Shown here: positions 1,089-36,994 of the stretch, piece after piece | How positions within the stretch are numbered: the first letter of the stretch is position 1 | Layout: every line of letters begins with the position of its first letter | Source: Rebecca billardiae RCC1528 | Lineage: Eukaryota > Protista > Haptophyta | Reading direction: 5' to 3' | NCBI GenBank assembly: GCA_965240325.2 | Contig: OZ251246.1 | Coordinates: 434,001-498,000 of the forward strand | DNA length: 64,000 nucleotides | The notes under the pieces: model-generated | What the model saw: only the letters and a program-made list of their open reading frames with translations | Told to the model about the DNA's origin: nothing | The model's database searches: none | Translations under genes and position numbers: made by a program

Positions 1089-2460
1089 TCATACTGACGC
1101 GGCGGTGCCCGGCGCGGCCGGCGCCGGCGCCGATTGCTTGCGAGCTTCCGAGCACTCGGCCTTCTTGCACAGCCACCCTCGGAGATCGATCTTCTGGCAC
1201 GTCGGGCAGCGTCTCGCCTTCGCCATCGGGCAGGGCGACACGCCGCACGAGCAGGTCTGGTGACAGCGGTCGAAGCTCGCCTCGAGCTCAGCAGCAGCTG
1301 CCTCCGCCTCCGCCTTCTTCCGCGCACGCTCGGATGCGGCCGCCGCCTTGCGCGCCGCCTCGGCCTCCTTCTGCGCGGTCTGCGCGGCCTTCTGCGTGTT
1401 GATCTCACGCAACGACCACGAGCCGTTTTGGCTGTCGAGCCGCGTGTTGTCCGGCTTCGGCGCGGCGAGCTCCACGGCGGGCACTGGAAGGACACCGAGC
1501 TGGTCTGCGAGCTCACCCGGGTCGAACCTCACCTCCTTGCGCACCGCGGCGAGCTCGGCGTCGTGCTCATCACGCTCGCGCACGAGCTTGGCGGCCTGGC
1601 GGCCGGAGTACTCCTTGGCGAGCTCGAGCTTGGCGCGGAGGGCTGGAGCAGTGTTCGAGCGCATCCCCGCAGGCGTGGCTGTGAACGCACTAAACGTAGG
1701 TGATGCGTGCGCGCCAGAGGGCTCGCCGTCGTCGGCCGAGCGCGCAGCCCCGCGCTCCGGAGTGCTTGGCGCCGCTGCCGGCGCCGCCGCCGCGAGCGAC
1801 GCGGCATCGGCCTCCTCCTCTTGCCGCCTGCGCTCCGCCTTCGCCTGTGCGGCATCGAGACGATCCACGAAGTCCTTCCTGTTGATCTGGTCCGGGTCCA
1901 ACACGTTGCCCGTGATGCCCACCTTGCGCCACGCGTTGATGATGTCAAAGGTGTCACACCACGAGAACCACGCACCCGGCGTGGACAGCTCCTCACAGCC
2001 GCCGAGGATCTGGAGGAACTCGCGGAGGCCGATCGTGGGCTCCTTGCCGTAGCTCGCCGTGTACGCGTGCTTGAAAGACGCCAGGCCCTTCTGGTATTGC
2101 GAGTGGAACTTGTGGTTGTACTGATCGAGAGCCTTCACGGTGCGTGCGGCCGCGCGAGGGCGGAGAGGTGATTGTGCGCGCGTCGCGCGCGCGCGCCGGG
2201 CCGATTGCACGCCAGGTACACCCGGGGCACGCGCGCGCGCCGGAGAGGCGCTGCAGCCGTCCGCGCGCACGGGCGCCTACCTGTAGGAAGTGCGACGTGT
2301 TCGGCTCCTCGGTGAAGATGCGGATGCCGAACTCGGACTCAGCAGTGCCGAGGGCTGCGAGCACGTCCTCCGTGTACCGCGACGAGTGGTTGTCGAGCAA
2401 CAGCACGATCGGGAAGGCGATGGGCTCCAGCCCCGCAGCCACCAGAGCTGCGTTGAGGTC
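1089..2460 (-). pseudogene. 5'-truncated pogo/Fot1-like (DDE_1) transposase containing one intron (2133-2280)
   Basis: Exon PIVLLLDNHSSRY...IRIFTEEPNTSHFLQ splices (GT...AAG) in frame to ALDQYNHKF, rebuilding the pogo-type 'LLLD.H.S...P.TSH.LQ.LD' motif. It is followed by NAWRKVGI and a Cys-rich tail (CSCGVSPC...CPTC...CKKAEC). No N-terminal HTH or first Asp is seen. Confidence 0.75.
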
Positions 2461-2644
2461 ACCAGACGCGCCGACAGGCCGCCTAGCCCTGCCGCGCGGC
2501 GCCCGCCACACAGCAGCCGCTGCGCGAGGTGCGTCGCCATCGCCGGGTCTGAAAGACGAAGCAGTCCGAAAAACGAAGCAGCGACCTGTACAGGCTCCAC
2601 GGACGGCCTACTGTACGGCCTACCGGTGCCGATAGTCACGAACC

Positions 2645-4753
2645 ATGGCGGCGGATGCCGGGCGCCGCGGGGCCGATGGCGCTCTGGACCTCGCGGGCCT
2701 GCTGCGCGTGCTGAGCGCGCAGGCGGCGATGCTCACTGTGGGCTACGCCGCGGGCCGAGCGATGCCGCGCCTCGACTACTCGCTGCTCGTCAAGTTCGTC
2801 TGGTACCTCGCCCTGCCCGCCATCCTCTTCCGATCGACGGCGACGCTCGACGCCGCCGCGGTCGACGCGCGCTTCCTGTGCGCGATGGTGAGCGCGAAGG
2901 CGGTGCTCGCGCTGTTCGCCGGCGTGTTCCTCGCGCCACGCCTCCTCCCCGGCCCGCGGCTCAAGTCCGCAGCCCTGTGCGCCCTGCTCACCACCTGCTC
3001 GAACGACCTGGCTCTTGGCTTGCCGATTGTCGCCGCTCTCGTCCCGCCCATGGCGGAGCAAGTGGTCCTGCTGGCCGCGCTGCAGAACCTGGTGCTCAAC
3101 CCGGTCTTCTTCGCGCTGATGGACGCCGCCGACGCCGCCGACGACCGCGCCGACGACCCCGCGGGGCCGCGCTACGCGCCGGTGCGCACGGAGGAGGACG
3201 CTGGAAGCGGCCGAGGCGGCGAGCGCGCGCACGGCTCCGCGCGCGGCGATCGGCGGAGCTCGGCGGCGGGCAAGCTGCACGGCGCCGGCGAGAGCGACGG
3301 GAGCGGGAGCGACGAGTCGGGCGCCGAGCCGCTCGCACTCGCGCGCGAGCGCAGCGGCTCGCACGCGCAGGGAGCGTGCAGGCCGATACGACACGCCGCG
3401 GCCGCGCGCAGCTCGGCAGACGGGGCGGCGGGTCTGGGGCTGGGGCTTGACGACGATGGCGGCTCGGCGGCGGAGAAGCAGGAGCTTGGCGTGGCGTCGT
3501 GCGGCGTCGCGGGCGGCGGGGAGCACGGGCTGCTGTCCAGCGCGGCCGATGGCGCCGCCGCGCGTGCCAGCCGGCAGCACGGTGCGCACGGCGGCGGCGG
3601 CGGCGGCAGCGGTGGCGCCGGGCTCGCGCCTCTCCTCACGCCTCCGCGCCACCACCTGTCGCGCTGGCTCGCGCGCGCGCGCGCCGGCTCGCTCGACGCG
3701 CACGGCGCGCGCGTGTGCGCGCGCGCGTGCGCGCGCGCGGCGTGGAGCGGCGTGCGCCGCGCGGCGGGCAACTATGCCACCCTGGCGGTCTTCTTGGGAG
3801 GCGCTGCGCACGAGGCGCTGCGATGGCGGGCGGCACGTGGCGGGCGTGGCGGGCGCGGTGGCGGCGCGCACGCGCCGCTGCACCTGCCGGAGCCGCTCGA
3901 GACCGTGCTCCGCGCGCTGAGCTGCGCGTTCCCGCCCGCGGCGAACATCGCGCTCGGTCTCTCCCTGTCGCCGCGCGCCGGCGGCGCCGAGCCCTCGGGC
4001 GGCGGCGGCGGCGGCGGCAACGGCGGCGGCGGGGGCGCGCGTACCAAGCGCCCGCGTGCACTCGCCACCGCGGCGCTGGTGAGCTGTAAGCTACTTCTCC
4101 TGCCGATGCTCTGCCGCGCCCTCGTCACGCTCACCGCTGTCCAGGCACCCGCCGCGCGCGGCGGCGCGGCAGGCGCGCGGCCGGCCTCCCCCGCGCCCAT
4201 GCGCTTTGGCTCCGTGCCCGCCGCCGTCCTCTATGGGAATGTCGCTTGGGTCTACGGTGCACTTCCCACCGCCCCCTGGGTGGCCGCCTTCGCGCATGCG
4301 TACGGTCACCACACGGTGATGACCTCCCGAGCGATCAGCACGTCGCTGCTCCTCTCGTTCCCGCTCGTCGTCGTCGCGAGCATCCTCTTCCTCAGCCCAG
4401 CCGAAGGCCCGAGCGCGTCCGCGCGCGGCGTGGCGCGCGCCGCCGACCCTGGCGGCGGCCACGCCCCGGCGGTGACGGCACGGTGGCTGCTGGCGGAGGC
4501 GTGGCGCGCGCTCGCGGGTGAGGGCTCACTCTTCGGGCCGTGCGCGGGCGCGTCGCTCGCGCTGGCCGGGCTGGATGGGTCACCGCTTGGCGGCAGTGCG
4601 CGCGTGGCAGCGGGCTCGAAGCAGCAGGTGGCGTGGGCGGTGGCGCGCGGCGCGCGCGGCGGCGGGCAGCTGTGGCATGCACAAGCTGCCGAGTGCACGC
4701 CCGCTGAGAGGCTTGCGCGCCTCATGCAGTGCAGCGCTGGGCCGCGTCGCTAG
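2645..4753 (+). CDS. Auxin-efflux-carrier (Mem_trans) family membrane protein, similar to the GPR155/LYCHOS permease domain
   Basis: Two hydrophobic helix bundles separated by a long low-complexity loop. Motifs ALPAILFRS, SNDLALGLPIV and YGALPTAP resemble GPR155 SNDFALGYPIV and YGVFPVAP. The 3' end is uncertain. Confidence 0.75.
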   Translation: MAADAGRRGADGALDLAGLLRVLSAQAAMLTVGYAAGRAMPRLDYSLLVKFVWYLALPAILFRSTATLDAAAVDARFLCAMVSAKAVLALFAGVFLAPRLLPGPRLKSAALCALLTTCSNDLALGLPIVAALVPPMAEQVVLLAALQNLVLNPVFFALMDAADAADDRADDPAGPRYAPVRTEEDAGSGRGGERAHGSARGDRRSSAAGKLHGAGESDGSGSDESGAEPLALARERSGSHAQGACRPIRHAAAARSSADGAAGLGLGLDDDGGSAAEKQELGVASCGVAGGGEHGLLSSAADGAAARASRQHGAHGGGGGGSGGAGLAPLLTPPRHHLSRWLARARAGSLDAHGARVCARACARAAWSGVRRAAGNYATLAVFLGGAAHEALRWRAARGGRGGRGGGAHAPLHLPEPLETVLRALSCAFPPAANIALGLSLSPRAGGAEPSGGGGGGGNGGGGGARTKRPRALATAALVSCKLLLLPMLCRALVTLTAVQAPAARGGAAGARPASPAPMRFGSVPAAVLYGNVAWVYGALPTAPWVAAFAHAYGHHTVMTSRAISTSLLLSFPLVVVASILFLSPAEGPSASARGVARAADPGGGHAPAVTARWLLAEAWRALAGEGSLFGPCAGASLALAGLDGSPLGGSARVAAGSKQQVAWAVARGARGGGQLWHAQAAECTPAERLARLMQCSAGPRR

Positions 4754-5875
4754 CTCGGGTCATGGAGCAAGCAGTTGCGCCCACCAGCGGAATATACGGA
4801 TGGCCGGCGCCAACGCGGCCATCAGTCCGTAGAACTTCTCACTCTTATTCGTCTGCCTGCACTGAGTGGTCCGCGCCCGGCGATTTAAAGTCGGCCGAGC
4901 CGCGCCGGTATACCGGCACCACGACAGGCGATTCCGAATCCGAGGCCGCGCCGACAGGCGGCATCAGCGGCGCCTGTTCATCAGCAGCAGCACACTGCAG
5001 CCTGCCCGAGAGCTGCGGCGGGGCCAAGTGCGGCGCGGCGGGGTTCTCGCGTCACACTCACGGACGACTGACGCCAGCGGATAGTCGCTGACTCGCCGCT
5101 GCGCCGCCAATTCACGGCACCTGACTGACTGCTCTGAGTCTGATAGTCCGGCTCGGGACCGCTGGCACCGGGGGGCCAACGACGCCAGCTCGGATCAGGG
5201 GGCGAGGACGCCCATTCGGGCTCGCGGCAGGCCGAGCGTATGCGACGCGGCGACGGTCCTGCGGGCGGACCTGCGGCCCGGCCCTGTGATCGGCCGCGCG
5301 CCGCGGTAGTCTGCCGGTGCGGGCGGCGCCACCTTTCTCTACGGGTCGGCAACCGTGCCGGCCTCGCCGTGGTGCGACGGCGACGGCGGCCGACGCGCGT
5401 GAGCACGGCGGCATATTCTTCTCTCGTGATTGCGCGAGAAGCAGTTGCTCTGGCTCCACCTGCCGATCGCACCTGAGCTCTCTGGAGTAGGTTGCTTGAG
5501 TGTTGGCTCGCGCGCCCACAGCAAGGGCGGCCATCGTTTCGAGCGCATCCAATCTCGAATCGGAGTCACCTGTAAAGAGTACAATATGAATATGGAGGGT
5601 AGCTTACCGTACGGGATGCACTAGTAAGTTGTAATGACAATGGTGATAGCGCGCGCCCGCGCCGGGGAGTCACTATGGGGGTAATGAGGCGTTAGATTAT
5701 CAGTGTTGGGTCTTGAAACACTTGGGGCCATCTGATTGGCCAGACCCCAGTTGTTCAGGCTCCCAAAGCGGCACGTTGCCCCTTGCAAACCGTCTTCCGC
5801 GCGCGTTCGCATCGAAAGGCAAAGAATCTCTCACGCCCACCGCCGACGAGCTGACCAGGACCGCGCCGGGCACGA

Positions 5876-9441
<3,566 letters not shown>

Positions 9442-29219: not shown

Positions 29220-30515
29220 GTCCGCCGGCGATACGGCGCGCGACCCCGCAGCCGCGTTGCTCGCCTGCTCGCATCCCGGCGCTGCGGCTGCCCGTCGTGC
29301 TGAACTCGACGAATCGCCGCGTGCAGCTAGCAGCTAGCGCAGTAGCCTACTCGGTAGCAGTAGAGTGAGTATAGTTATTGATACTGCGCTGAAGCCTGAA
29401 TCTGCTCTGTCCGTCTGTGGCTGTGCCGCCGCTGACGGCATGCGGACAACCGTCATCAGTCAGCACATCATCAGCAGTGAGTAGTCACTCCGTCACCGCC
29501 GATTGATGCCACTCACACTGCTAGTCGGGCAGCGCCGCAGCGCGTACGTAAGGTCGTAGTTATATTAATTATTATACTTTCCGCGTAGTAGTACCATCAG
29601 CATGTCCATGACGAGTATATATATATACCGCCGGCGGCGCCGAAGTTTGACCGCGCGCGCGGCGGGCTTGAGGCGCGTGTGACGATCCACTACTGGCAAC
29701 CGCCTCATCAACGACCTGAGGCTGATGAGCAGCGACGAATAACTGCGAAGCAGCCTGACGATGAAGAAGCTCACGCCGCGCCGCCGGTCGCGCCACCCGT
29801 CGTAGTCGGATATGCTGATAATCAGTAAGTACTACCGTGCTACTAGTATGAGTAGCAGACTTAGTGGGGTCAGAGCTCCGACCGTTACACTCCCGAGTGA
29901 CACAATCTCCCGAAATCTCGAAATATGAAATATCTCCTCGGTTTCAGTAACTACTGTTTGAGTCCGTTTAAGTTCGTTTAGGCTTAATTCCAGGGTGTAG
30001 AATCCGCCTGTGCCAATTTCAGACTGCCAAAATGTGATCTAGATAGACGGTGCGATTCTGGTGCAAATATAGCGAGATCACCTTGGAGATCGTGTATCTC
30101 CCGTACTAATTGTCAAAGGAATCGCCAATCTACAGTGATTTCCAATTTCCAATCCAACATTTTACTCGCAGTCACACAGTGGCGGCGCGACCGCTGCGGC
30201 GGCGCTCGCACAAAATCCTCCAAAATCAACCTGAACCTCATCCTAAAATACAGCAGGACAGCATGGCTGGCGGCGGCATCTCGAAGTATTCCAGATGATT
30301 CTGAATGAACGCGGAAACATGAGTCGAGCACCACGAACACGTTGTGCTCCGCACCGCAAACAAGAGTCGAAGCCGTCGACCGACCTCGCGACCGTCAAGC
30401 CTCGAGACGCGTTCCCTGACATGCTAGCACGGTGCTGGGAGAACTTGGGCAAGGATGGAGACGACGAGAACAGCGGCAAGGACGTGAACGGCCATCAGCC
30501 CGCCCCAGTTGCTCC

Positions 30516-31669
30516 CCTCATTGGGTTGAAGCCAGGCGTGGCAGAGCGCGCGGCATTGCCGCGCTGCTCATCGGCGATCGCGCGCAAGCGCACGCCAGAC
30601 TACCTCGCCGCTGCCCTGAGGGGCATGCAGGCTGAGAAGAACCGGCAAGGCGAGAAGCTCACGCTTCTCCGCAAGCCCATCTCCAGCGCCTCCGGGCCTG
30701 GCAACATCGCTGACCTGAACTCAGGCAGCATCGTGTCGTATGCGCGCAATGCTGCATCGCACGCAAGGCCTCGAGCCGACATCAAGGATCACCTTGAGGA
30801 GGAGGTTCGCGCCAACCGATTTAGCTCAGTCGTTTCGGGCTCTTCATTCCCTCGGACATAACCGTAAGTCTCCTGTGGGACACCCCGCGAGGGGCTGTAG
30901 TCCCGTCCAGTGTTCTGACGGATTTGTTGTCGAGGTTTTTCTCTCCCCGCCTGGTCTTTCCCAGGTGTTCCACCCTGCGAGCTCGTCTGCTCTGTGGCTT
31001 CGTAGAGACTCCGTCTTTTGTGGGCGGTGAGCCCTTCTTTGCTGCTGTGGCTTTGTGAGGCTCTTTTTGTGTCTTTGTTGTTGACCCGGGCGACTGTACC
31101 CGGAGGTTGCGCGTCGCGTACCGTGCTCGTTTTTCTGTCGTCTTTCTTTGTCGGTCATCTTCTTCGTGCTCCCCTCTTTCGTTCGTCTTTTTGCCGACTC
31201 CCTCGCTTTTCATTCCCCCCCGGAGCCGCGAGGCTCTCGCGAGGTGAAGGTCGAAAGCGCTTCGCGTGAAGGGCCAAGAGTTCTTATGCCTGCGTGTCGG
31301 TCGCTGGATTCGAACAGGTGACTTTATGTCCGAGGGAATGAAGAGCCCGAAACGACTGAGCTAAATCGGTTGGCGCGAACCTCCTCCTCAAGGTGATCCT
31401 TGATGTCGGCTCGAGGCCTTGCGTGCGATGCAGCATTGCGCGCATACGACACGATGCTGCCTGAGTTCAGGTCAGCGATGTTGCCAGGCCCGGAGGCGCT
31501 GGAGATGGGCTTGCGGAGAAGCGTGAGCTTCTCGCCTTGCCGGTTCTTCTCAGCCTGCATGCCCCTCAGGGCAGCGGCGAGGTAGTCTGGCGTGCGCTTG
31601 CGCGCGATCGCCGATGAGCAGCGCGGCAATGCCGCGCGCTCTGCCACGCCTGGCTTCAACCCAATGAGG
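30516..31669. repeat. 346-bp inverted repeat (30516-30861 / 31324-31669) with a 462-bp spacer inside the LTR element
   Basis: The arms are reverse complements; both strands encode the identical peptide LIGLKPGVAER...SGSSFPRT*. Confidence 0.95.
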
Positions 31670-31716
31670 AGGAGGTTCGCGCACAGCGCGGTGAGGAGGA
31701 GCGTTGCCGCTCGCAT
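31324..31716 (-). CDS. Antisense ORF of the LTR element (130 aa) with a signal-peptide-like N-terminus
   Basis: Begins MRAATLLLTALCANLLLIGLKPG; its 3' 346 bp form one arm of the inverted repeat. Confidence 0.4.
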   Translation of the reverse strand: MRAATLLLTALCANLLLIGLKPGVAERAALPRCSSAIARKRTPDYLAAALRGMQAEKNRQGEKLTLLRKPISSASGPGNIADLNSGSIVSYARNAASHARPRADIKDHLEEEVRANRFSSVVSGSSFPRT

Positions 31717-32012
31717 CCCCCGCCATCGCGCCACTCCATCCGCACGCACGTCGTTGCGCAGGGGATCTCAACAACTACCGCCCGGGACTCTGCGCACGCG
31801 AGCGCGGTTCAAGAGCGCGCGGCTGAGAGCCCGCAGCTCAAGGAGTGCCTTGCGGCCTCCGAGTCATCGAACGAGGTCACCGAGCGTTCCGGGGCAGATG
31901 TAGCGCTCGACGCTGCTGCCGCTGATGCCGCTCCGACCGTCGAGGCCCTCGAGCCTGCCAACGCTGCTCGGCGTGCTGGCCTTCTGGCCCGGCCGCCAAT
32001 GACAGCGCGGTC

Positions 32013-33861
32013 GTGACCGCAGTCAGTCTGCAGCCTCGCTCGCACGACTCTGTGTCTGAGTCTGACCGATCGAACGATGACATTAACACCGATGAGTGCG
32101 ACGCAAACGACCTGTATGGTCTGGCAGAGCAAACTATGCTCCAAGATGCTACGACACGTGACTCTGTCACAGCGAGCTCAAGCATCAAGTCAGCGGCCGC
32201 ATTTATTATTGATGCGCCTGACCCAAACAAATACGTTTACCCCAAAATTACCAGCCTCACGATGGCTTCCGAAGCCGAGCTGCTCGCCACGAGCGACACA
32301 AGCAGCCGCGAGATGACCGCCGCAGAGACGGCAGAGTCCTCGTCTGGCACGTATCGACTCGCGTCGAACGTAGGAAGCGCATGCGATGCAGGGGGGGCAT
32401 CATACACCTGCTTGACGGCAAAGCCGCAGCAAAACCAAGTTGGCGAGCGCGACGCGCGTGCGCATGCATCAGCTGCGTCAGCCATCACAACGCCACACTC
32501 TTGCAAGGAAGAGTATTCCGCCGAAGCTGCCGCGGATGCACATGCATCACCGCTGGACAGAACGAGCGTGAAGAAGCCCAAAGAAGGCACCACAGCCTCG
32601 ACGAGGGTCACTCCTCGCTCGAAGGTAGAGCGCGAATCGCCACAGAGCGCGCGCGACACATCGACCAATGCACTTGAGTCGAAGAAACGTGACTGGATAG
32701 TCATCGAAGGAGGAGTCACAGACTCTAATCCAACCAAGAAGGAACGTGTGTTCATGGCACGCGAATCCTCGGCAGGAGTGGATACACCCGCCACACACAA
32801 GCTGACACAGTCGGCTCTGAAATCCAAGCGCGCGGTACACAGCGCGATACGGGATGCACTCGCAGAAGTGAGCACCTACTACAAGGGCAAATCCTCAGAT
32901 GTCACACCTGACATAATGGAGCCCAAGGATAGCAAGCTATCCGGCTTTCAACTCATTGCCAAAGACAAATGGGTGAAAGACGCAGCCAAAATCGATCCAT
33001 ACAAGGCTGACAACGCTGACGCCAACAAGATCGGATCGGTCTACGATCGATCTGCGGCAGCGATATTCAAGCAGCTGAAGGACTCTATTGAGCCTCAGTT
33101 ATTCGCCTATCTGGAATCGAAGCTGCACATCAGCGATCCGACCAAGAACTACTTGGATCTGGCGCTGCTGCTACAGATATTTGAGCGCGAGCTCAAGATC
33201 ACAACTATGTCCGAACTCAGGGATGAATTCCTGAAGTTATACCCGACAAAGGTGTCGCCCATTGGCGCATCGGACATTATCAAGAAATCCGTCGAGCAAG
33301 TCCGCTCATCTCGATATGGGAATCTGGACGATGCTACGATGTTGGTCTTCAAGCTGTATAACAGCATGCACGACCATCCCCAAGTCTACGAGTCAGTTAT
33401 CTCGCACTTCGGAGCGCTCACGCCCGAGCAATGTGTGGATAACACTGACCAGATAATGGCCCAGATGGAAGATGCCTACAAACGGCACGGCTCAATGAAG
33501 CTACTCCATCAGAACAATACCAAGGGGAGAGAGACCGAAAATTATTCCAAGATACGCCAAAATGCTGATTATCAGCAAGGCACGCGGCGACGCGGTGACT
33601 TTGAGGGCGCCGAAGTCTTCGCCGCCCAGGCCCAAAAGGCTCCAGCCAATGGCGAGAGCGGGCCGAATATCTCGGACACCCGGCAAACGGTGCACTCACT
33701 GTGGTCTCAAGAACCATACTGCCCAGCAGTGTTGGAATCTCCACCCAGAGCTACGCCCCAAGGCCAACAATTACAACAAAGGCAAAAACAAGGGAGCCAA
33801 CAAATTTCCCAAGGAGCGTATCCATTTCCTGGATATTCCTGCTCCGGATGCCTATGATTAA
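32013..33861 (+). CDS. Gag-like protein whose CCHC zinc knuckle lies in the +1 frame
   Basis: Long ORF with a helical capsid-like region (AIFKQLKDSIEPQLFAYLE...LRDEFLKL). CTHCGLKNHTAQQCWNLHPELRP (Copia-type knuckle) is in the ORF 33562-33861 frame; the shift is near 33675-33685. Confidence 0.75.
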
Positions 33862-34658
33862 ATATCAAGGCAGGGCATAGCCCAATAACAAGGTCCAAGA
33901 TCAAGGCCAAAGAGTGAACATATGGTGCAAATAAGCCCAGGACTGACTCGGGTTACCCAAAACCGTCACACGGAAGTCCCAGCACATGACCCGTATCCTG
34001 GCATTGGCAACCATTACTGACTCCAATTCACTCATGCACACAGATGCACAAACAATACCAAGCCCAAAATCACTCATAATCCAAGCTTAGTCCTCACAGA
34101 CGAGCGCATATTGGATTGAGGGGGGGTGTCAAAGGAATCGCCAATCTACAGTGATTTCCAATTTCCAATCCAACATTTTACTCGCAGTCACACAGTGGCG
34201 GCGCGACCGCTGCGGCGGCGCTCGCACAAAATCCTCCAAAATCAACCTGAACCTCATCCTAAAATACAGCAGGACAGCATGGCTGGCGGCGGCATCTCGA
34301 AGTATTCCAGATGATTCTGAATGAACGCGGAAACATGAGTCGAGCACCACGAACACGTTGTGCTCCGCACCGCAAACAAGAGTCGAAGCCGTCGACCGAC
34401 CTCGCGACCGTCAAGCCTCGAGACGCGTTCCCTGACACTAATGTTGCCGAGATCGCGTCGAGATTGAGGTCGTATATCTCCGCCAGTATATATGTGACCT
34501 TTTTTCGCAAAACTTGTCAGCGTGACCCCAGCTAGCTCATTTCAGGCGAATATTGACATCCCGAAGTTTGAGAGCCTCATCTCAAGACGACAGGAAGTTG
34601 GATTTTGGGCCACGCACCCCCCAGTGGGGCTCTGACCCCTCTACGAGTAGGCAGTAGC

Positions 34659-35779
34659 TCACTCATCCTGCTCCTCCGACGCGCCCCCTTCCTCCTCGCC
34701 TTTTGCCATCGGATTGCACAGCGTGCACTTGCACGGCACGATCATCCCGCAGCAGAAGCAGCTGCAGCAGGAGATCTTCACCTTGCCGCTGCCCTTCCAT
34801 TGGCACATGTCCAGATCCTGCGTACATCAGCAGTGTATTGCGTGCCACCGGCATTGTAGTGTCGTGTGCGGGGCGGGGGCGGGGGCGTGGGCAGCCGGGC
34901 AGGTGGCACCGCCGCGCGTGGCTCGCAAGCTCGTGGGCGCGCGGCGCGCACGGCGCACGCGCGCGGGCCGCCGCGCCACGCGCGCACGTTCTCGAAGAAC
35001 ATCAGGTCGAGCAGCAGCATCGCGCCGAGCATGTTGGCCTTGGTGGTCGCGTCTGCCGAGGGGTCCTTGAAGTGCAGTCTGAACATGTCCGCGTCCGTGC
35101 CGAGCTCGCGCATCGCGTCGCTGAGCGAGTGCGGCTTCTGCTTGGTGATCACCGCGCGCCCGCCGTCGAGCTTGAAGCTCGTGTCGCAGCACAGCTCGGA
35201 GCACCCGCCGAAGCACTGAGGCCCCTCAATGGTTCCAATGTCGGTCTCGGACCGATCCACAAGCTTAATCGACGGCTTGCATGCGGCGCCGCCAAACATC
35301 GTGGGCTGGCGGACGGCGCCGATCCGACTGTGCGGCGAGAGCGAGCCGGCCTCGCCCTCCACCGCGCCCGCGTACATCGTCGCCCCGTCCGCGCACGGCT
35401 CGCAGCACGCGCAGCAGCCGAGGCACGGCTTTTTGCAGCAGCAGCCGAGCCGCTCGACCGTCATCACCTGGTAGAGCTTGTTGCCGCGAGGGTCGACGGC
35501 GTGCACGTCGACGAGGAGCGTGTGCCCTGGCGCGCAGCAGATCCGGGTGAGCAGCGACGAGCGCTCCTCGGCGAGCATCAGCCGCGTGCCGTTCGTCTCG
35601 TCGAAGATGTCGTATTGGTTTGCTGCCTCGCAGCAGCCGCACGTTCCGGCCTCCATCATACTCACGCGCTGCTGCACGGAGAAGGTGTCCACCCGAGAGA
35701 GGATCTCCGCCGTCTGCGCGTCGATGCCGCCCGACGAGGCGTCCTTCACCTCCAGGAAGGGCGTGTCGCCGTCCTCCAT
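34659..35779 (-). CDS. Phospholipid scramblase (PLSCR) family protein; intron 34818-34987
   Basis: QQRVSMMEAGTCGCCEAANQYDI, AEERSSLLTRICC, ELGTDADMFRLHF and KANMLGAMLLLDLMFFEN. The last exon is Cys-rich (CCSCFCC). Confidence 0.85.
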
Positions 35780-36994
35780 GGTGGACAACGACTCCCGCCC
35801 GCGCGGCTCGAGCGGCCGCGCGCACGCGGGTCACAGGCGAACTGACGGTTCGCGACTTCGCGTGCTGGAATCTATCGCAGCTCCCCGGGGAAGTCCCACG
35901 GTCGGGAGAGTGGGGGCGCGAATGCCCGTCGGATGCCGTCCCACCGCGATCGCAGGCCCCAGCGCCACGACCAGGTCCATGGGGCGTGGCGTAGCCGCGT
36001 AGGCAGGTCGGCGCGGCCGTACGAGCGAGAGTGACAGCTTCCCTTAAGACGGACGTTTCGACCACTCTCACGTCCACGTCCACGTCCTCGACCTCGTGCG
36101 ACCGGGTCGCGTAAGACTGCGCAGGGAAGGATGGGCAAGAAGGGGCCATGATCACCCTTCTGACGGCCACGCTGACCTCTTGGGGCATGCCTTGCGACGG
36201 TGCAAACCTGTCAATGTTCCGTCTGACCCCACACGTCGTGAGTCTGACGAGCAAGGTTGGCCGCGCGGTCCCCGCATCGCCAATACGTCGGCCGCGGCGT
36301 GTGCCGACAGTGTCAGTGTGCGCCCGTCAATGACAGCAGGGCAATCATCGACTGACATGGCTAGCGAGCTGATCGGGGCTGGAGCAGCCTTCTCTGGGAC
36401 CACGCCACGCGCTTTGGCGACCTCGCCACGGCTCAATGCCCGCCCCGGAGGCACTGACGTGCCGCACTACCTGTCTACCTGGCCAGCCACCGCCAAAGTG
36501 GGCACCACCATCTGGCCGTACCGTACAGTCTGAAAGTACGTAGTATTACTATTATTGTACTGCGGTATCAGCAGGCTACAATTACAGCACTAAGCTACTA
36601 CGGTCGTCCGGAAATTGCATCGAAATTGCATGATGTCCGTCTGGGACTCCCAGTCACGTAATCCATATGGATACAGTTTACTATGTTTTAACGTGCACAC
36701 TTGGTTAAGGCGTGATTGACGCCATCCAACACTGCACAAAGACACCGCCACAAAACAGACCGGCGCAGGCAGGTGAGGGGCGCGTTGCCGCACCTCATCG
36801 AGGCGGCCATTGCAGCAAGCGGCCGCCCCGCGCTCGGAGGCACGCGCTCGGGAGCGCGCTCTGACACCACACGGGGAGGGTGCTGCACCTGGATGTTGTA
36901 TCCCAGCCACCTCGAGAGTGCAGCCGCAGTACTATTTACTTTACATCATGCTAATTTCGTTTTGCTCATCAAGCATCACAGTAGCTAGCCTACC

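Follow-up and report, generated by a model that had tools for sequence, protein, structure and literature searches.

TR-GAG elements are non-autonomous LTR retrotransposons of plants and were described from flowering plants (Chaparro et al. 2015, PMC4350172). They are shorter than 4 kb, carry LTRs, a TSD, a polypurine tract (PPT) and a single Gag ORF without pol, and show signs of recent activity; their Gag and the Gag of autonomous Copia elements are related (PMC4350172). Foldback and MITE-like repeats are short, have long TIRs and many copies but no recognisable coding capacity, and are tied to rearrangements and palindromic arrays. FoSTeS/MMBIR-type template switching and fold-back priming make inverted duplications that are nucleated by short inverted repeats. 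In maize, part of MuDR is present as a naturally occurring inverted duplication at the Mu killer (Muk) locus, whose hairpin RNA silences the family (PMC3440606). Silencing of Ac/Ds was started by alternative transposition (bioRxiv 10.1101/2020.01.07.897926).

The locus described here lies at 30111-34437 of a 64,000-nucleotide stretch (the window) from the haptophyte alga Rebecca billardiae RCC1528 (GCA_965240325.2, contig OZ251246.1, positions 434,001 to 498,000, forward strand). The original prediction described a young gag-only LTR retroelement with a built-in RNA hairpin between its 5' LTR and gag. We find that a gag-only, TR-GAG-like family in this alga is real, and that the copy in the window is a damaged member of it. 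The hairpin is a by-product in one copy and not a device of the family.

A gag-only retroelement family in a haptophyte alga

The copy shows the features of an LTR retrotransposon of the Ty1/copia lineage, namely TG...CA LTRs, a 5-bp TSD and a PPT (Table 1). A direct repeat found by program (30111-30410 and 34127-34426, 100% identity) was lengthened to LTRs of 311 bp by reading the sequence, and the two LTRs show no difference over this length. The identical LTRs, intact TSD and PPT predicted originally were thus confirmed. A search for a PBS was negative: TGCTAGCACGGTGCTGGG, which follows the 5' LTR, begins without TGG and has no complement of at least 8 nt to the tRNAs that ARAGORN predicted in the analysed DNA (predictions only). 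The sole ARAGORN 'tRNAs' in this search were dubious tRNA-Pyl calls within the LTRs of one subfamily.

The assembly comprises 72 Mb in 41 contigs and is clearly long-read based; the best 40 candidates of each own-genome search were scored. The 5' LTR has at least 40 matches (91-100% identity), which supplies the copy count that the original prediction looked to. At least 40 sister copies are present, each of approximately 3.46 kb (range 3.45-3.49 kb), compared with 4.33 kb for the copy in the window, which is larger only because of its private 870-bp insert. The LTR start-to-start spacing is approximately 3,145 bp in the sisters versus 4,016 bp here. Among the 40 scored matches, the LTR pairs are all approximately 3.15 kb apart, except in a rearranged copy on C26, in which a 1,109-bp internal unit is present in triplicate. 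In another rearranged family copy, on C18, the interior lies between 100%-identical inverted X arms (X is the repeat described below). In all ten whole sisters examined, the two LTRs show 0-1 differences, and each of these sisters has a TSD of its own, which bears out the recent activity claimed for the element. The Gag half of the ORF is 98-100% identical across at least 40 family copies, with a pN/pS of 0.22.

Family elements have 311-bp LTRs and a single ORF of 855 codons, followed by a 3' untranslated stretch of 268 bp in which the PPT lies. The ORF is intact in the sisters, and its start ATG is placed at the LTR boundary. In the own-genome search, long open frames of 2,000-2,290 codons that carry RVT_2 further downstream matched the C-terminal 455 amino acids through their N-terminal part, at 49-52% identity (E 1e-70 to 1e-104). 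A CCHC zinc knuckle is found in frame in the sisters, at about residue 668 of the open frame examined. The N-terminal 400-450 residues or so match nothing outside the family in the own-genome search. Pfam gave no match for the ORF pieces of the window or for the intact sister ORF, so the Gag identity rests on homology within the genome and on the CCHC motif. Judged by this homology, the C-terminal half is a Ty1/copia-type Gag, in agreement with the gag-only, non-autonomous element first proposed. RVT_2 had no match in the family copies, and pol (protease, integrase and reverse transcriptase) was not found in them. The 3.45-kb sisters hold one ORF plus 268 bp and lack pol and RVT_2, and the family is therefore non-autonomous, as had been claimed from the window. 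The 40 scored LTR matches included no autonomous element with these LTRs; pol would have to be supplied in trans by autonomous copia elements of the same genome. The closest autonomous relatives lie at C15:406900-411000, C20:1632400-1636000 and C18:522000-526000. Taken together, these results support a young, gag-only, non-autonomous LTR retroelement family.

The family shares with TR-GAG elements all the features listed at the outset (3.45-3.49 kb; one 855-codon ORF). It differs in its host, a haptophyte alga and not an angiosperm, in the length of its ORF, with an N-terminal half specific to the family, in the start of the ORF at the LTR boundary, and in having no identified autonomous partner with the same LTRs. 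Elements of the TR-GAG type reach beyond flowering plants, here as a very young, high-copy and selectively maintained family.

The insert and its three junctions

Table 1. Features of the retroelement copy and its insert (positions in the window)
Feature	Position	Strand	Remarks
TSD, left	30106-30110	.	CTAAT; identical 5 bp beside both LTRs
5' LTR	30111-30421	+	311 bp, TG...CA; 0 differences from 3' LTR
First ORF piece	30421-30861	+	ATG 30421-30423 straddles LTR end; runs into X; stop TAA 30859-30861
A, native portion of left arm	30516-30812	+	about codons 33-131 of family ORF
m, left	30795-30812	+	18-bp direct duplication TGAGGAGGAGGTTCGCGC; sister alignments overlap by 18 bp
X, unrelated 578-bp repeat	30804-31381	+	58-bp TIRs at 30804-30861 and 31324-31381, 58/58
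A', inverted duplicate of A	31373-31669	-	element-derived right arm; 100% reverse complement of 30516-30812
m, right	31665-31682	+	18-bp direct duplication; first 5 bp TGAGG (31665-31669) = microhomology with A' end
Rest of family ORF, Gag-like C-terminal half	31683-33861	+	frame-broken by +CG 31990-31991 and +C 33679
CCHC zinc knuckle	33691-33732	+	C-x2-C-x4-H-x4-C; in this copy not in the frame of the upstream ORF
PPT	34113-34126	+	GGATTGAGGGGGGG; directly adjoins 3' LTR
3' LTR	34127-34437	+	311 bp; identical to 5' LTR
TSD, right	34438-34442	.	CTAAT; same 5 bp as left side

The inverted arms (30516-30861 and 31324-31669) are 346 nt long, 100% complementary and separated by a loop of 462 nt, just as first described. 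The full stem is predicted by RNA folding (-992 kcal/mol). The identity of the arms, like that of the LTRs, tells only that both are recent. The location given originally was wrong: the left arm lies inside the family ORF, so the arm is coding sequence and not leader. Pairwise BLAST aligned 30111-30812 and 31665-34437 colinearly with the sisters, with an overlap of 18 bp. The private insert (30813-31682) consists of the X repeat and a 297-bp stretch of the element duplicated in inverted orientation. The sisters match the arm once, in forward orientation, at 89-100% and only over its bases 1-297, and the inverted A' match was absent from all sisters in pairwise BLAST and present only in this copy. 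The 80-bp junction between the supposed leader and X has full-length matches nowhere in the 72-Mb assembly except in the two arms here; with the best 40 candidates scored, another hairpin copy could escape if its similarity were low, but a full-length match would rank first. The hairpin is thus not built in, and its absence from sister copies is the very result that the original prediction had named as speaking against it.

In this copy, 30421-30828 (C30:464421-464828) matches residues 1-136 of the family ORF. The insert breaks the ORF, and two frameshifts private to this copy, +CG and +C, break it further. Where the sisters keep a single open frame of at least 724 codons downstream of the insert site, this copy has three frame pieces. 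With the insert and the frameshifts in its ORF, the copy is dead. Nothing shows that it stayed mobile with its stem, as had been supposed; a foreign repeat and an inverted duplicate interrupt its ORF. We also considered the +CG as the mark of a shared defective lineage and rejected this, since comparison with the sisters showed it to be private to this copy. On the minus strand, an antisense ORF of 141 codons (31324-31749) has a signal-like start, but it was likewise rejected as a captured host gene. It is the reverse-complement duplicate of the family ORF and continues from there into neighbouring sequence, and the N-terminal half of the family ORF had no match outside the family.

The X repeat has dozens of full-length copies elsewhere in the genome (87-99%), often in head-to-head arrays. 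Its ORFs have no Pfam match. X resembles Foldback and MITE-like repeats in each respect named above: it is multi-copy, 578 bp long, has 58-bp TIRs and is without a recognisable transposase. Unlike them, it has no identified TSD or autonomous partner. There is no direct TSD around X at this locus, where its flanks are inverted. The other copies mostly adjoin further X copies, often meeting at a shared near-palindromic terminus of 14 bp, an unusual arrangement among cut-and-paste MITEs. X adjoins rearranged retroelement pieces at C18, C14, C36 and C34 (the loci on C34, C36 and C14 were analysed by coordinates only). These three lie at C34:398400-399600, C36:619800-622900 and C14:1164700-1169000; as candidate templates of the X copy here, the one on C36 is 100% identical to it over 485 bp and the one on C34 is 99% identical over the full length. 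A tRNA-derived SINE origin of X or of the arms was rejected, as ARAGORN and Rfam found nothing in 29500-35000. The terminus of X includes GGTTCGCGC in about 25 other copies, and other X copies match from 30804 onward. X shares its first and last 9 bp (GGTTCGCGC and its complement) with the element, so these are microhomology junctions. Together with TGAGG, the three novel junctions lie on microhomologies of 9, 9 and 5 bp.

Origin of the rearrangement

Read from the sequence, these microhomologies and the 18-bp direct duplication most likely point to template switching or fold-back priming. We propose that at GGTTCGCGC a growing DNA strand would have switched from the element to an X copy as its template. 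On the new strand, the 58-bp TIR of X would then have folded back to prime backward copying of the element, and the strand would finally have rejoined its original template via TGAGG, at a return point 18 bp upstream of the departure point. The setting would be chromosomal replication or repair and, less easily, reverse transcription. The outcome would be a dead copy; any transcript from it would form a perfect stem of 346 bp. A simple fold-back from a clean X insertion does not, on its own, explain the 18-bp direct duplication. As in FoSTeS/MMBIR-type events, the inverted duplication is centred on a pre-existing inverted repeat (the 58-bp TIRs of X), microhomology is seen at every junction, and return near the departure point would leave a small direct duplication. 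The locus differs from such events in that the central inverted repeat is itself mobile and would have been copied from elsewhere, and the mechanism is deduced from sequence only. Overall, we think it probable that a young, abundant, TR-GAG-like family derived from Ty1/copia has in this copy undergone a private secondary rearrangement by microhomology-mediated template switching or fold-back priming. The copy would then offer a cleanly resolved, three-junction inverted duplication nucleated by a TIR repeat.

X could instead have entered the ORF by transposase-driven cut-and-paste, with the inverted duplication made in a separate, later event, for example a double-strand break at an X end in attempted excision followed by fold-back repair. 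The TIRs and many dispersed copies of X, which are like those of a DNA transposon or foldback element, and its position beside rearranged retroelement pieces at the loci named above would suit this course. However, the missing direct TSD tells against it, 9 bp common to the X terminus and the target would be unexpected for transposase insertion, and a clean insertion does not give the 18-bp duplication at the right-hand junction. We consider such a two-step origin unlikely. Less likely again is an assembly artefact, in which a chimeric or fold-back long read or a mis-join would have created an inverted duplication that is not in the genome. Fold-back chimeras do arise in long reads, on which this assembly is based, and the arms are 100% identical. 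Yet the structure sits well inside its contig, its flanks are unique and its TSD is intact, the microhomologies of 5-9 bp around a complete repeat unit are unlike overlap-based mis-assembly, and a comparable palindromic structure of X and element is present at C18.

The idea that the genomic RNA carries the hairpin as its own device, for self-limiting siRNAs or for dimerisation and packaging, in an element that is mobile with it, has become barely tenable. The predicted stem would be extremely stable in RNA, and this copy has kept its LTRs, TSD and PPT intact, but no sister examined and no scored genome match has the hairpin, it interrupts the ORF, half of it is a foreign repeat, and the genome has no detected Piwi or PAZ domain. 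The finding as proposed, in which a mobile element carries a Dicer substrate as part of its design, fails, which is itself worth knowing.

Hairpin RNA and silencing

Six-frame searches of the genome gave no match for Piwi, though divergent or intron-split genes could be missed, and none for PAZ, in a search that had no positive control and in which such genes could likewise be missed. One RNase III match was found, a single domain in a frame of 381 codons, and the genome has one RdRP gene. The production of siRNAs from the hairpin is doubtful because no Piwi or PAZ domain was found, and the siRNA role first suggested is weakened accordingly.

The locus is comparable in structure to Muk. Both are single loci that arose by rearrangement, with an inverted duplication of part of the coding region of an active transposon family, and from both a long dsRNA without mismatches could arise that is homologous to every active copy. 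Here the A/A' duplicate covers 297 bp, approximately codons 33-131, with 89-100% identity to the scored sisters. Unlike in Muk, the arms are only 346 bp long, of which 297 bp are element. The maize silencing needs RNAi and RdDM machinery, whereas no Argonaute is detectable in this genome. Transcription from the intact 5' LTR would yield 346 bp of perfect dsRNA over these codons, and the target would be a currently active family of at least 40 copies with identical LTRs in an alga apparently without Argonaute. That this accidental locus acts as a trigger like Mu killer, silencing the family through an RdRP-linked or non-canonical dsRNA pathway, is a long shot. In a weaker variant, X would systematically make palindromes with retroelement fragments (at this locus and on C18, C14 and C36) and would be a recurrent source of hairpins. 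Only if the hairpin is transcribed and affects the family would the locus serve as a useful natural experiment on how transposons are controlled where no Argonaute is obvious.

A recently amplified gag-only family

The assembly that holds the window (at C30:434001-498000) is eukaryotic and GC-rich and comprises 72 Mb in 41 contigs. A repeat search and reading of the sequence revealed the LTR pair, TSD, PPT and 346-bp inverted repeat described in the original prediction. Direct comparison of the two LTRs of this copy gave 0 differences. The perfect inverted repeat of 346 bp exceeds chance by far, and the full-length stem is present in the predicted RNA fold of the region (−992 kcal/mol).

Features of the window copy and its surroundings (window positions)
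Feature	Position	Strand	Description	Basis
5' LTR	30111-30421		311 bp, TG start, CA end	sequence read at ends
3' LTR	34127-34437		311 bp, TG start, CA end	sequence read at ends
Direct repeat pair	30111-30410 / 34127-34426		100% identity	repeat search
CTAAT flanks	30106-30110 and 34438-34442		either side of LTR pair	sequence read
Purine tract	34113-34126		adjoins 3' LTR	sequence read
Inverted pair	30516-30861 / 31324-31669		346 nt, 100% complementary, 462 nt apart	repeat search
Repeat X	30804-31381		extent set by other X copies, which match from 30804 on
Element/X overlap	30804-30812		9 bp, left junction
A'	31373-31669		inverted copy, without mismatch, of 30516-30812, element sequence that leads up to X
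18-bp direct duplicate	30795-30812 and 31665-31682		repeats element sequence preceding X
Intronless ORF	34778-35788	minus	336 codons, Cys-cluster-rich, directly downstream of window copy

At least 40 LTR matches with 91–100% identity were scored in the assembly. Nearly all are paired at a spacing of ~3,145 bp; the spacing in the window copy is 4,016 bp. Sisters measure 3.45–3.49 kb. In the ten whole ones that we compared, the LTRs differ by 0–1 positions and each copy has its own 5-bp TSD, which indicates very recent amplification. The reading of a gag-only, recently active element is supported and extends to the whole family. The sisters carry one ORF of 855 codons (857 or 899 in some), whose ATG straddles the 5' LTR end. 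The ORF stops just 268 bp short of the 3' LTR, leaving no space for pol.

The family protein has no Pfam match. Its C-terminal 455 residues are 98–100% identical across about 40 copies. They also share 49–52% identity (E 1e-70 to 1e-104) with the N-terminal portion of open frames of ~2,000–2,290 codons, in which the copia-type reverse transcriptase domain RVT_2 follows ~3 kb further downstream in the same orientation. For example, the Gag-like region C15:1130412-1131137 and RVT_2 at C15:1127343-1128104 share one 2,228-codon frame. This homology, together with an in-frame C-x2-C-x4-H-x4-C knuckle of the CCHC type, identifies the protein as a Gag of the Ty1/copia type. The 400 residues at the N-terminus are found only within the family and are more variable (78–100% identity). 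Plants are known to have a TR-GAG class of non-autonomous LTR retrotransposons (PMC4350172), and the family, here in an alga, is of this type.

The N-terminal ~400 codons (30421-30812 plus 31683-32490) have no relatives even in autonomous copia polyproteins. This half also evolves faster than the Gag half, with pN/pS of 0.67 and ~0.22, respectively (eight intact copies; small counts and non-independent pairs).

Make-up and origin of the hairpin

In pairwise BLAST, the window copy is colinear with its sisters along two stretches, 30111-30812 and 31665-34437, which overlap by 18 bp in the sister. The window copy therefore has 870 extra bp (30813-31682). The sisters match only bases 1–297 of the hairpin arm, once and in forward orientation. 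A probe of 80 bp that spans the left junction (30773-30852) has full-length matches only at the two arms of the window locus. The sisters thus lack the inverted repeat, which, by the refuting condition set in the original prediction, rules against a hairpin built into the element. The hairpin results from a rearrangement in this copy alone, neatly resolved but an ordinary structural mutation.

The central 560–578 bp of the insert is X, a repeat unrelated to the element. X has dozens of full-length copies (87–99% identity) on many contigs, often as head-to-head neighbours with ~6-bp gaps, and carries perfect 58-bp terminal inverted repeats (TIRs). It has no tRNA or Rfam match, and its ORFs have no Pfam match. 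Given an insert of X plus A', the 346-bp arm combines 297 bp from the element with 49 bp from the TIR of X, and the X interior forms the 462-nt "loop".

All three junctions, read directly in the sequence, show microhomology. At the left junction, the final 9 bp of the element, GGTTCGCGC, double as the first 9 bp of X, and the X/A' junction is the mirror image of it. At the right junction, the A' end ...CCCAATGAGG overlaps the 18-bp direct duplicate TGAGGAGGAGGTTCGCGC by TGAGG. Serial template switching with fold-back priming has a footprint known from FoSTeS/MMBIR-type and fold-back events. The three junctions, the inverted duplication centred on the inverted repeat already present in X, and the return into the element 18 bp upstream of the departure point together match such a footprint, and fold-back priming would have taken place at the TIRs of X.

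An origin in chromosomal replication or repair accounts for all these features. It is conceivable that the rearrangement arose during reverse transcription instead, as the family copy on C26 has a 1,109-bp unit triplicated between identical LTRs and the one on C34 directly adjoins an X copy 99% identical to the one here; however, this route requires an X template within the particle and explains the single X copy less readily. Insertion of X by a transposase and later fold-back repair is unlikely, since these two steps predict neither the 9-bp overlap nor the missing TSD. The mid-contig position, intact TSD and microhomology junctions fit poorly with an assembly artefact, which we consider very improbable. 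A hairpin with a built-in function is essentially excluded.

Consequences for the window copy and RNA silencing

The inverted repeat had been placed between the 5' LTR and gag, but its left arm corresponds to codons ~33–131 of the family ORF and not to a leader. In the window copy, the ORF starts at 30421, enters X and stops at a TAA (30859-30861). Further private lesions lie downstream (+CG at 31990-31991, with no other occurrence, and +C at 33679), and the remainder of the ORF is split into three frames. With the stop in X and two frameshifts, this copy is unable to make Gag: the rearrangement killed it. Its mobility would depend on sister Gag and autonomous copia pol, and we found no sign of the window copy ever moving with the hairpin. 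An ORF of 141 codons on the antisense strand, which opens with a signal-like start, was rejected as cargo, as it is a mirrored segment of the family ORF.

Six-frame searches across the whole assembly detected neither a Piwi domain (controls matched in two prokaryotic genomes) nor a PAZ domain (without a positive control). One RdRP gene is present (C1:3394323-3395726). RNase III is represented by a single domain in a frame of 381 codons (C17:112328-112600), which lacks the two-domain layout of Dicer. Such searches could miss genes that are divergent or split by introns, and canonical RNAi in this alga is therefore held to be doubtful rather than absent. The missing matches may reflect Argonaute loss in this haptophyte lineage. 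Emiliania huxleyi, also a haptophyte, is reported to possess Argonaute paralogues that contain PAZ and PIWI domains (PMC4839659), so a true absence here would be lineage-specific. If the window locus were active, its closest functional analogue would be Mu killer in maize, a chance inverted duplication of MuDR whose hairpin RNA silences the family (PMC3440606).

Related structures elsewhere in the genome

Adjoining X copies have a common 14-bp near-palindromic terminus, GGTTCGCGCCAACC (e.g. 30804-30817 in the window and 2385-2410 in L068, a stretch of C18). They often lie head-to-head or tail-to-tail. These traits are atypical of cut-and-paste MITEs and reminiscent of concatemer junctions. L068 (C18:1721436-1727732) contains a second young palindrome of X and the family with the roles swapped, X forming the arms and the element the loop. 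A truncated X variant is present there in two inverted copies (about 2391-2913 and 5871-6297), which show 100% identity over at least 427 bp and flank a 3.4-kb gag-only element piece that spans from 12 bp past the 5' LTR to 3' LTR position 120.

At other loci, seen by coordinates only, X arrays directly adjoin broken or inverted LTR-retroelement pieces. They adjoin gag-only ORF fragments in opposite orientations at C14:1164782-1168975, inverted X copies enclose a fragment of copia RT at C36:619867-622842, and X copies begin ~2 bp past the predicted 3' LTR of a family copy at C34:396531-399514. X may preferentially insert into, or rearrange, retroelements.

The triplicated copy on C26 (L067, C26:965633-972314, at 1766-3422) has identical LTRs, a TSD and three tandem 1,109-bp units. 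The unit begins at LTR position ~157 and takes in the first ~190 ORF codons, with 0–1 bp of junction microhomology, and its left edge may correspond to the 5' terminus of the element RNA. ARAGORN called a "tRNA-Pyl(cta)" at LTR positions ~146–223 in a ~92%-identity LTR subfamily (e.g. L067:646-723 and 6015-6092, and L070:2739-2816, in another stretch of the assembly) and not in the window copy. The call is probably a false positive but marks a tRNA-like fold in the subfamily LTR. The window copy is inserted ~340 bp from the end of the downstream minus-strand ORF, whose product we take, judging by eye, to resemble a phospholipid-scramblase-type protein.
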